From sequence record MW812339.1: 64,000 nucleotides of DNA, one strand, 5' to 3'. How positions within the stretch are numbered: position 1 is the first letter of the stretch; every line of letters starts with the position of its first letter. Positions 3,933 to 30,805 of the stretch are shown piece by piece. The position numbers and the translations under genes were made by a program. Under the pieces are notes generated by a model. That model had not been told where the DNA came from. It did no database searches and was given only the letters and a program-made list of their open reading frames with translations.

Positions 3933-4331
3933 TTAACTGGCTGGACCCAACACATCCTTTAAGTGATGGGTAATGCCTGATGTCCAGGCATCGCCTTCGC
4001 GTACAGTCTCTGGCTGGGCGTTCACCAGGCGACGGAGCGAAATGGTGTGCTCTGCCAATCCTGCTACCGGCAACACAGGTCGTACGGTGGCTTGCTTAAC
4101 GTAGTCGACCACGTCATCAAATCCCTCTTTAGATGACCAGTCAATCTCTACGCCGTCACACACATCCAGTTGACGTGTGTTATTTTCTTCATCGGGGTGG
4201 AATGTAAAACCCCAATTGATGGTATCCAGGAGACCGCGGTCAAGGTCATTGACCACTTTAATTTTCGCGAGGGTATCCGGATGCGCCATAATCACGTCCA
4301 GTGGACGCAGTTTACTTTTCATGCTTAGCAT
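3933..4331 (-). CDS. Hypothetical protein, 132 aa
   Basis: AGGAG SD, ends at terminator. Confidence 0.7.
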   Translation of the reverse strand: MLSMKSKLRPLDVIMAHPDTLAKIKVVNDLDRGLLDTINWGFTFHPDEENNTRQLDVCDGVEIDWSSKEGFDDVVDYVKQATVRPVLPVAGLAEHTISLRRLVNAQPETVREGDAWTSGITHHLKDVLGPAS

Positions 4332-4392
4332 CTCCTATGGAATCTATTACAGCACAGACTCCCTACAGGATAGGCTGGTGCCGTAAAAAAGG

Positions 4393-6552: not shown

Positions 6553-6641
6553 GATTGTTACCTTTTTGTTGCTATTGCTTCTATTGTTGTTGTTCCGTGT
6601 CATTTCCCACACGGGTGGGTTCGGTTGTTAGCCGAATAAGT

Positions 6642-6920
6642 TTTTCCGGGATGGTATTACACATCAACACACCAGGCATGGATAGAAGTTGGCTTCCATC
6701 CCGGAAAAGAGGTCACAGACCGAGGGCTCGTGAAGGCTCGATGGATAAGCGTCAATAAAAACCCTTTCAGCCTCTGGTCTGTATTAGGTCCAAAGTCCCC
6801 GTGCGGAGGAGCAGCCCATGCAGGTAGGCGGCAATTGACACGGAGACTAAGGATAGGTTTTCGTGTTACCCTGACCGGATGAATGGATGTCTTCGGAACG
6901 TCTTCAGGATAGGGTAACAC
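6642..6920 (-). ncRNA. Four tandem 55-70 nt stem-closed structured units (ncRNA candidates)
   Basis: Closing stems 6642-54/6696-6708 (13 bp perfect), 6715-25/6771-82, 6794-6803/6839-48, 6863-72/6911-20 (10 bp perfect); no credible ORF. Confidence 0.5.
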
Positions 6921-6925
6921 AAAAG

Positions 6926-7030
6926 TGGTGCTGTGTACTGGGGACTCGAACCCCAGGAACCCTTAGGGTGTTCAGTGGTGAGCTTTTACCTCACGACCTA
7001 CTTAGGTTTGGCCACTTCCTTACACACAGC
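6926..7030 (-). ncRNA. Non-canonical tRNA-like RNA, 105 nt, encoded CCA
   Basis: GCTGTGTG/TACACAGC acceptor, type-II-like D arm, GGTTCGAGTCC T arm, long variable arm, extended bulged anticodon arm, ACCA end. Confidence 0.7.
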
Positions 7031-7039
7031 ATTGTAATG

Positions 7040-7120: not shown

Positions 7121-7195
7121 CGAGCACCGAGCGGGAATCGAACCCGCGAATATCCGATTATGAGTCGGGTGTTAACCAGCTTAACAGCCGGGCTC
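7121..7195 (-). tRNA. tRNA with CAU anticodon (Ile2-like loop) and irregular acceptor stem
   Basis: Loop CTCATAA in CCCGA/TCGGA stem, T arm GCGGG-TTCGATT-CCCGC; acceptor GAGCCCGG/TCGGTGCTC has an extra pair and a bulge; G discriminator. Confidence 0.75.
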
Positions 7196-7196
7196 T

Positions 7197-7261
7197 TGTC
7201 CTTGATGGATTTGAACCATCCTCGTCATTTGACTGACGACCCCAGACCGACCGGGAAAGAC
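7197..7261 (-). ncRNA. Minimal tRNA-like element, 65 nt
   Basis: Intact T arm GATGG-TTCAAAT-CCATC, 6-bp acceptor GTCTTT/AAGGAC, 6-bp anticodon-like stem with 6-nt loop GTCAAA, shortened D arm. Confidence 0.55.
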
Positions 7262-7265
7262 CATT

Positions 7266-7355
7266 GTGGGGCGAGGGAACGTCCAGGCTTCCGCCCAGAG
7301 ACATGGGGTGCGAATCCGTCATGTCTGTCATCACTGATGGTGACAACGCTCCCAC
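7266..7355 (-). ncRNA. Four-way-junction structured RNA candidate, 90 nt (not a tRNA)
   Basis: Closing stem GTGGGAGCG/CGCCCCAC; arms TGTCA/TGACA, GACATG/CATGTC, TCTGGGC-GGAA-GCCTGGA (GNRA loop). Confidence 0.55.
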
Positions 7356-7359
7356 TGTT

Positions 7360-7440
7360 TGGCTCCGTGATGTGGAGTTGAACCACACTTCTCTCTAGCC
7401 GGTGGAGACGTAAGAGAATCTAAGCCGACTTAGTCACGGC
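7360..7440 (-). ncRNA. Non-canonical tRNA-like RNA, 81 nt, encoded CCA
   Basis: GCCGTGA/TCACGGA acceptor (G1-A72 mismatch), GCCA end, T arm TGTGG-TTCAACT-CCACA, 5-bp D stem with 4-nt loop, elongated bulged anticodon arm. Confidence 0.65.
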
Positions 7441-7448
7441 AATACGGT

Positions 7449-7518
7449 CGTCGGTTATGGGATTCTAACCCACCTAGTCTGGTCGCGAGCCCAGTGCATC
7501 ACAGTTTTGCTTACCGAC
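7449..7518 (-). ncRNA. Degenerate tRNA (CGC-like anticodon, 8-nt loop, mutated T loop)
   Basis: GTCGGT/ACCGAC acceptor, GCA/TGC D stem, CTGG/CCAG stem with loop GCTCGCGA, T loop TTAGAAT. Confidence 0.55.
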
Positions 7519-7587
7519 ATGGAAATAGAAGGAGTAGGCGTGTAACGACGCCTCGTGTTAGTTGCTCGTCCGTAGACGCTACCCTTA

Positions 7588-7660
7588 GGGCATCCTGGTG
7601 AGGAGTCGAACCTCAACCGTTTCCTGCATAAGCCGGATACGGTGTTCCACAACCCAGGCG
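7588..7660 (-). ncRNA. Non-canonical tRNA-like RNA with extended anticodon arm
   Basis: T arm TGAGG-TTCGACT-CCTCA, acceptor CGCCTGG/CCAGGATG with bulge, 3-bp D stem, long CGT..TCC/GGA..ACG arm. Confidence 0.55.
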
Positions 7661-7665
7661 ACTGA

Positions 7666-7815
7666 AGTCGTACCCCTAAGGCTCTCCTTAGGAAAAGGGT
7701 GACACCCCTCCGAATTTCACGGAGTTCTCAAGGCTGCACTAGCTGAACGATTTACGAACCGCTGTAAGGCTGCCAGTTATCTTCGCTGCTCATTGGCGGC
7801 GAGTAACCAGTGTCA
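7666..7815 (-). ncRNA. Multi-hairpin structured element downstream of the HNH gene
   Basis: TGACAC/GTGTCA closing pair, CTCCG/CGGAG and TCGC/GCGA arms, CCTAAGG-AGAG-CCTTAGG hairpin. Confidence 0.35.
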
Positions 7816-7821
7816 TTGTTC

Positions 7822-8358
7822 TTAAGCTGCTTTGGCCTTGTGTGTCTTAGAAAGATACCGTGCCGGGTTTTGGCGAATATCCACAATTGTGGAGTGGTGC
7901 ACGCCGTACTTCTCACCAACAGAACGAACCGTGCCATGTTCATTCTCTAATATCTCTCGGACATCAGAACCAGAGAGCTTGATATTTCTCGAACCATCCG
8001 GTGGGACAAACAACCCTTCTTCTATCGCGTGGATAGTATTCTCACGATGCGTTACCCATTCCAGATTGACTGCCCTAGGGTCAGTCTTCTTTCCGTTTTT
8101 GTGGTTTACACACGGTTTGTTTTCTGGATTAGGCACAAAGGCAGTGGCCACTTGGATGTGCGTTTTGAGAACGACGTTTGTTCCTTTTCTTCCACCGACC
8201 TTGGAGATGTGCCCAGGATACCCATTGATTAAGTTCTGACGCACAGGTCTGTTGCTGCGTTTTGAGAACATAACACCATCTTCATTAACTAGAAAATGGT
8301 CTGGGCAACTCACACAGTCTTTCCACTCGCCGGCTGGAAGGTTTAACTCTTTACTCAT
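7822..8358 (-). CDS. Free-standing HNH homing endonuclease (NUMOD4-like N-terminus, HNH_3-type core)
   Basis: VNHKNGKKTDPRAVNLEWVTHRENTIHA matches the HNH_3 pattern; C-terminal HTH-like segment. Confidence 0.9.
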   Translation of the reverse strand: MSKELNLPAGEWKDCVSCPDHFLVNEDGVMFSKRSNRPVRQNLINGYPGHISKVGGRKGTNVVLKTHIQVATAFVPNPENKPCVNHKNGKKTDPRAVNLEWVTHRENTIHAIEEGLFVPPDGSRNIKLSGSDVREILENEHGTVRSVGEKYGVHHSTIVDIRQNPARYLSKTHKAKAA

Positions 8359-8504: not shown

Positions 8505-8510
8505 TGAAAG

Positions 8511-9230
8511 GGTGCCGGTGCATCCCAGCTTACGTTCGGCGCTTTCAGCTCCCTCGGGCTTATTAGCAATGAACACTTACCGGGCGCACCGACATATACC
8601 ACAGTAACCTCGTTGGAAGTCACTCTGGTATTGCTCGTTGCATACTACTGTGTTTACACGTAAATGATTTAGCGAGTGCCTATTAATTATATTAATTAAC
8701 CTAAATTAAGAATGAGGGTGATGGACTTCTTCTTCTGAGCCAGGGTATCCCCCGGTCTTAGCGTCTCCAAGCACCACCCTCTTTCACATTACGCATTGGT
8801 AGCTCTCTTGACTACCGGTGGCCGTTGCCACCCTAACACTGGGAACCTAATCCCATTCGGTCATCAGATTGTAGTTTACAGGCGTAGCGAGTCGGCTTAA
8901 TGGGCCGGTGCTTGCCTGTCCGATTTGGACGGTTGTCGTGGTGACGCTAGTCTGTAATCGGGTCCCTTGCGGGTAAACCCATCGCCTGTAACTCGAACGT
9001 GACTAAATACCCAGAACCGCCAACCAGCGAAGAGCTGGCTAATGAGTCTGAATATTTCACGCATAATCATCTCTCGTATCGAATGAGGTCATGACCGGTC
9101 AGATACCCAGCAACGTGAACGCCCTGGTCTTTTGTGTATCTGGCTGCTACGGATTTAGGGGTGCACCGTAGGTCTACGCTGCGTTACAACTGCTACCGGC
9201 CCATGTGGGACATCAACCCACACAGCAATC
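8511..9230 (-). ncRNA. Run of structured ncRNA candidates upstream of tRNA-Tyr
   Basis: Units 8511-8590, 8596-8631, 8714-8781, 8807-8856, 8876-8991 (GCAA tetraloop), 9093-9174; mismatches on plus strand become G-U pairs on minus strand. Confidence 0.5.
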
Positions 9231-9292
9231 AGAAGGTTCACCAAAAGCCCGTCAATCCCAACCACAGGACCACCGGTTACAACAAAGAGGGT

Positions 9293-9310
9293 GGTGGGCC
9301 GAAGCCCACC
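9293..9310 (-). terminator. UUCG hairpin after small ORF (terminator or processing stem)
   Basis: GGTGGGC-TTCG-GCCCACC; U-tract weak. Confidence 0.5.
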
Positions 9311-9312
9311 GT

Positions 9313-10448: not shown

Positions 10449-10763
10449 CTAACCCGTAAATTTTACCGGTTCACCGTAGCGAACGTAGCGCTGGATAGCC
10501 AGCGTCAGTAATCCAGGAATGGCATCGACGGCTTCGCAACCAGGCAGAACGCGGTTCGCTTCGCAAAGCAGGTAACCGTACTTCGGCTTGAGTTTAATCG
10601 CACAGCCTACCGCAGAGAGTGCAGGCATGGTCGAGAATTCGATGGCTTCGGCGTGAACCTCCAGCCAAGACAACACCCCAGTTGGGTCCTGCAAGTTCGA
10701 GCCTCCGAGGAGAACTCGCATATCTTCAACGGTCTTAACACCGATAAGATTGAATTCTGACAT
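10449..10763 (-). CDS. Hypothetical protein, about 104 aa
   Basis: GGGAG SD before ATG 10763. Confidence 0.65.
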   Translation of the reverse strand: MSEFNLIGVKTVEDMRVLLGGSNLQDPTGVLSWLEVHAEAIEFSTMPALSAVGCAIKLKPKYGYLLCEANRVLPGCEAVDAIPGLLTLAIQRYVRYGEPVKFTG

Positions 10764-10805
10764 AACAAACACTCCCGTGATTGAATTTGGTTTCAGCCAG
10801 GTGCT

Positions 10806-11670
10806 AACGCTTCACAGTGTGGGCACCCACCCCTCTCGTCTTCCCGAGCCGCCAAGATAAACCAGATCACCTCCAGTTGGAGTCTCCCCCAAGCTTGCGG
10901 TTAGCAACACACAAGCCACGCTCCGACGCAACGCCGAATTCGTTTTGATTTTGGCCACACCCACAGAGCGGATCGCTGCACGACTGACCCGGAGGTAAGT
11001 TCAACGGCGTCGTACTCCCCGCTCTGGGGCTGCCACGGCTAACTCAGTATCCGCGTAAGCCGCCTTCCCGCAGGTTGGGCGACAATGCCGCGAGTAAACC
11101 CACAGCTGCAACTGAGTACCTGAATGGGTGGTGAAGCGTTGGAATCCCCGCCTACGCTCACCGGTTCTGTTTCCACGGCGAAGTTTCTCAGAACATACTA
11201 AACAAAAATCAAGTGTTAGATTGAATTTTCGTTTTATCGAAGGCACCCACGGTAGGTACTCTCGAAAAAACGTCCTGGGCAATCAACCCAGGACTGGAGC
11301 CCCGACATGCAGGGTTTAAAAAAGCGATTGTCCATGGCGCGGTCAATCAGCTATTCGCATAATACAACACACTCGTGTAAAAAAATTCCCGGCCGAGGAA
11401 CCATGTCTAAATCCCAAGGCCGGGGAGTACACACAGCAGTCGCCCCTCAGGTGGGGGCTTGGTGGAATTACAGGAGTCTGTCGTGGAATAAAATTACCTC
11501 CCAGGCTCTGGTCGACTTGTCAGAGTTCCGAACCTGGGAGGTGACCACCGAATCTACGGCATGTGGACATCGGAGGGTGGTCTGAACACACGATAACCCA
11601 ACCACGTAAAAAATCCGCATAACTCGACTCCACCCTCGGGCTGATCCCGATCGCCTGGCGCACACTCGTA
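10806..11670 (-). ncRNA. Large structured non-coding RNA candidate(s)
   Basis: Nested long-range helices in 10806-11140 plus many 7-10 bp hairpins in 11270-11650; no ORF with SD. Confidence 0.5.
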
Positions 11671-11689
11671 ATAAGGATCACGCGCGTTT

Positions 11690-11816
11690 TAATATACTAC
11701 TACGTAGTAGTATAATTATAATATATTTAATTATATCCCTACGGGATATATATTTAATTATATTATTTATATTCTTTTAAAAGATCCTGTAGGAAACACA
11801 TACGCGTACGTACGCG
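11690..11816. other. AT-rich palindrome/direct-repeat cluster (origin, pac or strong promoter candidate)
   Basis: 22-bp perfect palindrome 11693-11714, 16-bp direct repeat 11721-36/11748-63, palindromes 11773-84 and 11803-16. Confidence 0.5.
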
Positions 11817-12457: not shown

Positions 12458-12468
12458 CTGTTCAGTTA

Positions 12469-13068
12469 TCACATCACACGGTAGACACAACCGACATGAC
12501 GGTAACCGCGTTTTCTCGCCAGTTCTCGATACTCATCAGTCAGCATTGAAGAGGTGACAGAGACATACGCAGTGTCCTCCTGCTCAGCTTCTGGATAATT
12601 TGATTCTCGGTTGACGACATTGGGAAGAAAGGCAGGTTGTTCGACATGTGAATAGAGCGCGGCCATGAGATTGCAGCTTGCTTGCTCTAAACCCTTCACT
12701 GGAACTTCCCAGATATCAGCGATTAATTGACCGTTGGAAACAGTAATCTCCGGACGGACAAAATAATCGTAACGGTTTACTTTGTCCAACTTCGCGATTC
12801 GCTTAACAGCGGTATTGATGTCGGCCTGTGTCAGTGTTTCGTGGAATAGGTTGAAGCGAAGTGTAGTCTGTCTGAAACCGCCGCGAATTGCCGTGTGAAT
12901 AAATATTGGATTACGGCCGTTTTTATCTTTGGTTTCGACAATGAAGATACGGTCTTCTGAACCACGTATTAGACTCAGTAGGTTCTCTTCGTAGTGATTC
13001 CAGTTTGCTGCTTTTTCGATGCGGTGATTGCGAATGAGTTCAACTCCACCAATTGCAAAACGTAACAT
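12469..13068 (-). CDS. Hypothetical protein, about 199 aa (paralog of next gene)
   Basis: AAGGAG SD before ATG 13068; shares KAANW motif with 13095..13625. Confidence 0.7.
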   Translation of the reverse strand: MLRFAIGGVELIRNHRIEKAANWNHYEENLLSLIRGSEDRIFIVETKDKNGRNPIFIHTAIRGGFRQTTLRFNLFHETLTQADINTAVKRIAKLDKVNRYDYFVRPEITVSNGQLIADIWEVPVKGLEQASCNLMAALYSHVEQPAFLPNVVNRESNYPEAEQEDTAYVSVTSSMLTDEYRELARKRGYRHVGCVYRVM

Positions 13069-30205: not shown

Positions 30206-30754
30206 CTAGATCTGCAGTAGTGTGCCCGAGTGTGATATCGGGTCGTTATAGAAGGCTTCACATTGAAGACAGATAGCTTCAATCTTCGGTTCTTCAGTAC
30301 GCGACCAAATCGCGCCACCACCTTGCAGAATCCATTCACGACAGTTACGACCATAATCGTCGACAAGCAAATTCCCCCGTGAGGCGTACGATGCTTTCTG
30401 CCCTGAGTTCTCAGTGACAATTACCTTGTCAGCTGGTACCCCAAAGTGTTTCAAGAACCAACGTTGTTTCGAATCTACTACGAGCTGATGATCGTAATGA
30501 TCTTCAGACCCAGAAGTCAAAATCGCCCAACTGTCGCACAGTCTATCGACCGTTTCCAGAATACGCTGCACACCCTCGATTGGCTCGAGTTTGTAGAACA
30601 GGTCTGGGTCACGCTGATACATCTCGCGTGTCAGACTACGACGCCGCAGTTCAGGTATTGCATTGAACTGCTTAATCGTCATTCCTGGAAAATGAGTTGA
30701 CAGAACATACTTGCGCCAGCGGGCAAACACGCCATCGCTATCCAGATAAAACAT
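30206..30754 (-). CDS. HAD-family 5'(3')-deoxyribonucleotidase (NT5C-like)
   Basis: FYLDSDGVF (DxD), KQRW, QKA, LLVDD motifs. Confidence 0.82.
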   Translation of the reverse strand: MFYLDSDGVFARWRKYVLSTHFPGMTIKQFNAIPELRRRSLTREMYQRDPDLFYKLEPIEGVQRILETVDRLCDSWAILTSGSEDHYDHQLVVDSKQRWFLKHFGVPADKVIVTENSGQKASYASRGNLLVDDYGRNCREWILQGGGAIWSRTEEPKIEAICLQCEAFYNDPISHSGTLLQI

Positions 30755-30805
30755 TTTCTATTCCTTAGAGTTCCCCAACACATGAAAAGAGCTTCATGTA
30801 AAAAA

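Follow-up and report, generated by a model that had tools for sequence, protein, structure and literature searches.

A large structured RNA was found in an unannotated gap of the jumbo phage pEa_SNUABM_29, and the comparative evidence makes it very likely that this is a genuine structured RNA encoded on the minus strand. The RNA was found to be present in the genera Seoulvirus, Erskinevirus, Machinavirus and Wellingtonvirus, and it probably represents a new RNA family that was not previously described. The best explanation overall, to which about even credence is given, would be a new family of RNAs that bind the 30S ribosomal subunit, with the loading of ribosomes in cis as the most likely role. 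The window, that is, the whole stretch of 64,000 nucleotides analysed here, was found to be 100% identical to Erwinia phage pEa_SNUABM_29 (MW812339.1, 248.8 kb, genus Seoulvirus), and a position in the window equals the position in the MW812339.1 record minus 124000. The genus Seoulvirus is classified within the Chimalliviridae. Phage nuclei were demonstrated by experiment in SPN3US and Asesino (PMC13282480). Both of these phages were found to contain the RNA.

The region flagged by the original prediction (10806-11140) was found to lie in the unannotated gap between CDS 00165 (10449-10763, minus) and CDS 00166 (11307-11585, plus, annotated with 92 aa). The start of gene 00165 was located about 30 nt past the 3′ end of the RNA. 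Every real neighbouring gene was found on the minus strand, including the HslV-family peptidase gene and the tRNA-Trp, Tyr, Ile and Asn genes, and these tRNA genes occupied the same strand as the RNA at a distance of 4 kb or less. The gene-free region around the RNA extended over ~1.7 kb, and a block of non-coding conservation was found at ~10783-11690, well beyond the flagged region. The non-coding DNA was 70-78% identical within Seoulvirus and was conserved block-wise in Erskinevirus and Machinavirus, and most of the relatives' records contained no annotated gene under it. CDS pEaSNUABM29_00166 (11307-11585, +) is probably a spurious annotation, since it was found inside the conserved non-coding block whose indels are not divisible by three, contained no Pfam or PHROG family, and was unannotated in most of the relatives.

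The tRNA cluster was found to contain big unannotated gaps at 6553-7038, 7196-7821 and 8505-9312, and in the region corresponding to these gaps SPAsTU contained additional tRNA genes (Gln, Ile, Asp and Glu). A free-standing HNH endonuclease gene (HNH_3; phrog_59) was found amid the tRNA genes at 7822-8358 on the minus strand. Only a partial tRNA was found with Rfam at 7131-7185, where GenBank contains tRNA-Ile2(cat) and ARAGORN gave nothing. The gaps of the tRNA cluster may contain decayed tRNAs or more non-coding RNAs. On the other side of the RNA, an AT-rich stretch at 11700-11800 (GC about 0.37-0.40) with the short palindromes TATATCCCGTAGGGATATA and CTACTACGTAGTAG was found in the middle of the gene-free region, and the GenBank records of SPN3US, EC001, Proteus phage 7, Asesino and Caitlin were found to start or end within ~1 kb of it. 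An origin or a cluster of early promoters could be located there.

The original prediction had read the RNA on the plus strand. Folded on that strand, the span 10806-11140 had an MFE of -111.8 kcal/mol (z = -1.02), which was equalled or bettered by 14 of 100 dinucleotide shuffles. The plus-strand model therefore fails on the original prediction's own terms, as its helices were no stronger than those of shuffled controls. The same span on the minus strand had an MFE of -143.8 kcal/mol (z = -2.63), with two of 100 dinucleotide shuffles as good, and the comparatively defined core (10793-11126) gave a z of about -1.2 on both strands. Folding of the single sequence was thus weak, and the case depends on the comparative evidence.

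The comparative evidence was obtained from an alignment (A2) of 27 distinct homologues, gathered by BLAST and by motif scans of IMG/VR and metagenomes; Wellingtonvirus (Kwan, Wellington and pEa_SNUABM_11) and several uncultivated jumbo contigs were added by these motif scans and BLAST searches. When exact patterns, a 17-mer and a hairpin, were scanned against IMG/VR and the metagenomes, the family was recovered along with chance matches, and looser patterns in IMG/VR and GTDB genomes gave chance matches only, as judged by nhmmer. The named structure contained 60 pairs in ten helices (T, Pa extension, Pa, Pc, HL, Pd, Pe, Ph, Pi and Pj). Across the 27 homologues, 92.1% of 1540 cells were found to be paired, against 31-43% when the partners were slid by 1-3 columns. 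On the minus strand, compensatory changes on both sides were found at 30 of the 60 pairs (183 cells), and none of 500 column shuffles matched the observed pairing or covariation score. When all column pairs were scanned for additional covarying helices or pseudoknots, none was found to be convincing beyond the named helices. A long-range CCG/CGG helix, given by RNAalifold with 11 sequences, was dropped because its fourth pair was found to covary within Pc (U-A to C-G) in the 27 sequences.

The strand was found to be the minus and not the plus strand of the original prediction. Reading the alignment on the plus strand cut the pairing of Pi from 97.9 to 73.7%, of Pd from 100 to 81.4% and of Pc from 96.6 to 87.0%, because the G.U pairs turn into C.A. 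The loops of Pj were found to be GUGA, GAGA, GGGA and GCGA, which are GNRA tetraloops on the minus strand only. The strand-specific G.U pairs and the GNRA loops therefore point to an RNA whose transcription runs the same way as the tRNA genes and the downstream gene of the HslV-like peptidase. The region might also be a DNA-level element, such as a replication origin, a packaging region or a promoter cluster, with the helices as by-products, and the ~1.7-kb gene-free region, in which the GenBank records of many relatives start, would fit such an element, as would its AT-rich palindromic stretch at about 11700-11800. However, covariation with strand-specific G.U pairs and GNRA loops is expected of an RNA and not of DNA sites, no GC-skew switch was found, and the short homologue described below was located within lambdoid late operons, far from origins, so that a DNA-level element is very unlikely.

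The core of the RNA (10793-11126, minus, 334 nt) was delimited by two universal blocks, UUCAGGU (5′) and GCUGA (3′), in the alignment of the 27 homologues and was found to contain the helices Pa, Pc, HL, Pd, Pe, Pf, Ph, Pi and Pj. The helix Pa (11042-11117, minus) was found to enclose a variable hairpin domain and contained compensatory changes, e.g., ACUCAGU/ACUGAGU against ACUCGGU/ACCGAGU, UCGGUC/GACCGG and CCUGUC/GACAGG, followed by the presence of the helix Pc (10952-11035, minus), a long arm that bears HL and contains CAGAGCGG/CCGCTCTG. In Pc, 8 of the 12 pairs were changed on both sides and 95-100% of the cells were paired. The hairpin HL (10990-11009, minus) contained a covarying stem, with four of its five pairs changed on both sides, and the universal and invariant loop GAACUUACC, which was followed by UCC in Seoulvirus and Erskinevirus. 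The hairpin Pd (10923-10939, minus) was 100% paired and contained invariant G.U pairs (C.A on the plus strand), followed by the hairpin Pe (10892-10917, minus) with 5 covarying pairs; both hairpins were missing from Wellingtonvirus. Pf contained a triplet of GGGG / CUCC / GGAG segments in which two alternative pairings are possible. The universal 3′ domain (10793-10872, minus) contained the Shine-Dalgarno (SD)-like block and AUCUUGGCGG, followed by the presence of the hairpin Ph, the helix Pi and the GNRA-capped Pj, and Pi was found to contain 9 covarying pairs with 97.9% pairing. The universal terminal blocks, 5′ UUCAG (11124-11120) and 3′ CUGAA (10796-10792), were found to be complementary; with a GGU/ACC extension they may form a conserved terminal closure, although all of these bases were invariant.

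The complementary segments named in the original prediction were all found exactly at their predicted positions (10806-15/11131-40, 10824-29/11125-30, 10964-71/11019-26 and 11042-48/11111-17), and its two inner helices proved to be real. ACTCAGT/ACTGAGT corresponds to Pa and CAGAGCGG/CCGCUCUG to the inner portion of Pc, and in both the pairing was kept by compensatory changes in the 27 homologues. The two closing helices were not conserved. Among the 7 relatives with both segments, the outer 10-bp helix was paired in 54.5% of cells, and it was perfect only in pEa_SNUABM_29, whereas CACCCA/UGGGUG was 84.8% paired but almost invariant, and it competes with the helix Pi. The nucleotides 10806-15 were found to form the GNRA-capped hairpin Pj, 10824-29 the 5′ arm of Pi, which is the best supported of all helices, and 11131-40 the 3′ arm of S1, a hairpin formed locally, which takes up the 5′ arms of the outer helices. 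The outer long-range pairing was thermodynamically competitive in pEa_SNUABM_29 and was present in its MFE structure, and it looks like an alternative conformer or a lineage-specific coincidence. The boundaries 10806-11140 were accordingly given up for the core at 10793-11126, or ~400 nt including the 5′ extension.

In Kwan and Wellington, an HNH gene was found to be inserted in a peripheral hairpin with the core unbroken. This HNH-type homing endonuclease ORF (12464-12973 of locus L029 in Wellington; gp291, 2016-2525 of locus L101 in Kwan) contained 169 aa within a ~615-bp insertion in the variable hairpin directly 5′ of the SD-like block, and the insertion was flanked on each side by a copy of a GGUGAUC-type motif. 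The ORF scored 24.6 bits with HNH_3, slightly below the 24.8-bit cut-off, and the Kwan annotation is a putative HNH endonuclease. Many group I introns likewise contain a homing-endonuclease ORF in a peripheral hairpin, and the size, the multi-helix junction and the GNRA loops of the RNA would also fit a ribozyme that splices or cleaves itself, be it group-I-like or of another kind. The original prediction had suggested a ribozyme, but nothing in support of one was found, and signals of group I introns, RNase P and tmRNA were all missing. At E up to 10, none of the Rfam models of introns, RNase P or small ribozymes matched, both flanks were non-coding and conserved as non-coding, which leaves no exons for splicing, and the entire 5′ domain was missing from the short homologues, which makes a ribozyme the least likely of the readings weighed here.

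The 5′ extension (11127-11194, minus) was found only in Seoulvirus and Erskinevirus and contained the hairpins S0 and S1, which were formed from different sequences in the two genera. S1 was found to covary between them and contained the conserved loop CGGGGAWW, and S0 was found to begin exactly at the G of a conserved TATG. The sequence TAGTATG (11194-11200, minus) may be the core of a late promoter of the phiKZ type (T-3 A T G+1); it was invariant in Seoulvirus, Erskinevirus and Caitlin-type Machinavirus and missing in Huxley-type Machinavirus and Wellingtonvirus. The late promoters of phiKZ consist of TATG, with transcription starting at the G (PMC7598289). Based on this likeness and on the first base of S0, the best guess for the putative 5′ end of the RNA in pEa_SNUABM_29 is G11194. 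The 3′ boundary was set at GCUGA (~10793), as the conservation was found to stop there. Most of the jumbo relatives contained a T-rich TTTTTTAC motif after GCUGA, between the RNA and the next gene; in pEa_SNUABM_29 the stretch from the RNA to gene 00165 was free of promoter-like motifs. The motif TTTTTTAC was also found at 30797-30804 and 4382-4389 (minus), within narrow gaps between genes and 43-51 nt before the starts of two ORFs of the minus strand (30206-30754 and 3933-4331), and we infer it to be a phage promoter motif. A sigma-70 promoter scan gave nothing above shuffles.

Upstream of the RNA, an alignment of 21 relatives was found to contain a conserved block (11213-11264, minus) with a covarying stem-loop UCGAGAG...CUUCGA, followed by the presence of a CGAYAAA box and a CUAACAC box; this block may be a part of the RNA or its promoter. 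The terminator scan gave an intrinsic-terminator-like hairpin with a U-run (11265-11294, minus), which closes an upstream non-coding unit and whose stem was found to covary in all genera. This second conserved non-coding unit (11265-11690, minus) contained TTATTAC/TTTTTTAC motifs at 11674, 11612 and 11383 without following ORFs, and two terminator-like hairpins at about 11392-11423 and 11272-11294. One or more small RNAs are probably encoded there. The covariation term of the unit was +3, the sequence diversity, over 11255-11625, being too low for covariation.

The original prediction had limited the RNA to nucleus-forming phages, but the universal 3′ domain was also found in lambdoid-type temperate phages and prophages of 24-53 kb. 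A covariance model, R1, was built on the universal 3′ domain (10793-10872) with 77 positions and 17 pairs, and it gave a single match in the window, on the minus strand only (E = 9e-20). When R1 was run on 80 IMG/VR loci, each taken from the surroundings of an HslV-like peptidase homologue, matches were found in ten non-jumbo contigs of 24-53 kb, and all ten were located on the strand of the peptidase gene, 29-2357 nt upstream of the HslV-like gene. The hairpin Ph of these matches contained compensatory changes from CUCG/CGAG to CCCG/CGGG or CUAG/CUAG. The element was present at a minority of the HslV-like loci (14 of 81), and further members were obtained from a motif scan, Proteus phages and E. 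coli prophages. In 16 distinct distant members, whose alignment was fitted to R1, 84.7% of the cells were found to be paired, against 21-47% when slid, and 15 of the 17 R1 pairs contained compensatory changes.

The lambdoid-type form was found to contain ~100-130 nt and to sit in the late operon, downstream of the lysis genes and ahead of those for the terminase. It was located directly 5′ of variable ORFs, often the HslV-like peptidase, with no terminator between, and in three loci (L344, L351 and L354) the ATG of the HslV-like gene was found 29-34 nt past the element. The gene first downstream of the RNA was also found to vary between the jumbo genera. The short element was preceded by CGACAAG and GCAACAC boxes, which are similar to the CGAYAAA/CUAACAC boxes upstream of the jumbo RNA, and these shared boxes suggest that the jumbo form may have been derived by a ~250-300-nt structured insertion (Pa to Pf) into the short element. 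In E. coli prophages, such as that of HL15 (L409, element at 4001-4073), the short element was found before a 68-aa ORF and a metallopeptidase pseudogene and not before an HslV-like gene, and an Acb1 anti-CBASS gene was found near it. The short element may mark a slot for variable cargo between the lysis and terminase genes.

The sole single-stranded block common to every member was found to be GGAGGUGAUC(C), or its variants with a one-base bulge or with A/G. The 3′ tail of 16S rRNA is GGAUCACCUCCUUA, and the GGAGGUGAUC block of the window (10865-10874, minus) is a 10-nt complement of this tail; the plus strand at 10865-10874 reads like the 16S tail itself. The best RNAduplex site against GGAUCACCUCCUUA was found to be the homologous block in all 40 members (27 jumbo and 13 small), and RNAduplex predicted 10-14 paired nt with energies of -17.6 to -25.5 kcal/mol. 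When these RNAs were subjected to mononucleotide shuffling, such energies were reached in 0-7.5% of trials. The alternation of A and G in GGUGRUC was found to retain the pairing with the same U of 16S rRNA. An RNA with so strictly conserved a complement of the 16S tail probably acts through binding of the small subunit; binding of the 16S tail as the mechanism, judged from sequence, is held at slightly less than even confidence.

No SD-type start codon with a conserved ORF was found 5-9 nt downstream of the block; the nearest start was a UUG ~11 nt away, and the block was 80-110 nt from the next real start codon. The UUG was present after the block in nearly all members, and in the window its frame contained 20 codons with the conserved UGA of GCUGA as the stop, as would be expected if the block were the true ribosome-binding site of a short leader peptide with attenuation-type control. 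This improbable reading was rejected since no frame was conserved. The UUG frames varied in phase and in length (5-23 codons) and were broken by 1- and 2-nt indels in the Ph loop, UUG was replaced by CUC in L344, and the substitutions were compensatory for base pairs and not codon-like.

Binding of 30S subunits would proceed as follows. The invariant single-stranded block would pair over 10-14 nt with the 16S rRNA tail of the host as a 'super Shine-Dalgarno', and because no conserved ORF follows the block, the folded RNA would capture 30S subunits. In the cis role, which would amount to standby or translation control, ribosomes would be loaded or held where the downstream gene/tRNA unit begins. 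This role is the most likely because the element was always found just 5′ of same-strand ORFs. The HL loop GAACUUACC was found to resemble the 16S tail and to be complementary to the GGAGGU/GGUGA block, so that it may form a pseudoknot with the block or mimic the 16S tail. The block is possibly partly sequestered in the helix Pf or in a small AAGA/UCUU stem, and the alternative pairings of Pf together with the HL loop would be compatible with a regulated exposure of the block. The elaboration in the jumbo phages would thus consist of a ~250-nt structured domain whose loop GAACUUACC would mimic the 16S tail and could mask the block.

The RNA could also be a stable, independently transcribed RNA that acts in trans, be it by scaffolding an RNP, by serving as a 30S decoy or sponge, or as a ROOL/GOLLD-like RNA-only assembly. 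As a decoy, it would titrate anti-SD tails during host take-over and would not control the neighbouring genes. The presence of TTTTTTAC between the RNA and the next gene in most of the relatives would uncouple the RNA from that gene and hence favours action in trans, and a terminator was found before the RNA. The size and complexity of the RNA, the complementary universal UUCAG/CUGAA ends, as in the terminal helices of stable RNAs, the 5′ hairpin S0 beginning exactly at the putative +1, the intact core of Kwan and Wellington despite the HNH gene in a peripheral hairpin, and the adjoining tRNA genes, as with ROOL and GOLLD, fit the same reading. However, the short homologues were found directly before ORFs without a terminator, pEa_SNUABM_29 contained no promoter-like motif between the RNA and 00165, and the putative terminal helix was invariant and showed no compensatory changes. 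A trans-acting RNA is therefore regarded as possible, at well below even likelihood. If the 16S tail is indeed bound, action in cis rather than in trans is judged slightly the more probable. It is only tentatively proposed that both forms constitute one class of phage 30S-capture RNAs, with ~100 nt in the lambdoid phages and ~400 nt with an anti-SD-mimicking switch loop in the jumbo phages, which would redirect or sequester ribosomes.

The RNA was compared with the known families. The Infernal search suggested with the original prediction was run, and no Rfam 15 family was found to match. The whole window at the gathering score and five small-phage loci gave only tRNAs and noise, and the region 10600-11500 at E up to 10 with six jumbo relatives gave no family match. 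No match to the RNase P RNA models of Rfam was found in the window, in 10600-11500 at E up to 10 or in the six relatives, and no tmRNA, with tRNA-like ends and a tag frame, was found by ARAGORN (three tRNAs only) or Rfam. The literature searches gave no description of this RNA.

Among the known RNAs, ROOL and GOLLD are similarly phage-encoded, large and intricately folded, are often found beside tRNA islands, and have no known function. GOLLD was reported to pull down ribosomes (10.1101/2024.12.08.627333). The position beside tRNA genes, which this RNA shares, is a matter of context and does not define either family. However, no homology in sequence or structure was seen, as no Rfam model of these families matched this RNA even at E up to 10, and unlike ROOL and GOLLD it was found to be smaller, to occur in phages of Enterobacterales, to have a short relative of the 5′-UTR type and to contain an explicit complement of the 16S tail. 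Extended Shine-Dalgarno, standby and enhancer leaders likewise contain a single-stranded purine-rich anti-SD complement in the 5′ leader upstream of ORFs. Unlike a normal SD, which is far shorter, the complement in this RNA contained 10-14 nt with no conserved ORF at SD spacing, and the structure around it, of 100-400 nt, was conserved and covarying. Group I introns resemble it as multi-helix RNAs of ~300-400 nt with an HNH ORF in a variable hairpin, as in Kwan and Wellington, but this RNA contained no exons, no match to an intron model and no recognisable core, and the ORF was missing from most members. The tRNA gene cluster of phage T4 encodes the stable non-tRNA RNAs species 1 and 2 (RNA C and D), of unknown function. 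These are similarly found alongside phage tRNA genes on the same strand, but are far smaller than this RNA, and homology with it is not expected.

The central claim of the original prediction, a large multi-domain conserved structured RNA beside a tRNA cluster in nucleus-forming phages, was thus borne out by the comparison. Strongly covarying large RNAs without a family are rare, and earlier examples proved to be ribozymes, RNP cores or RNA cages. A covariance model of the RNA would let annotators avoid spurious ORF calls in the region. The RNA was kept across four genera of nucleus-forming jumbo phages, whose messages need host ribosomes outside the phage nucleus, and the binding of 30S subunits would provide a concrete and cheaply testable hypothesis for how these phages may steer the ribosomes of the host.
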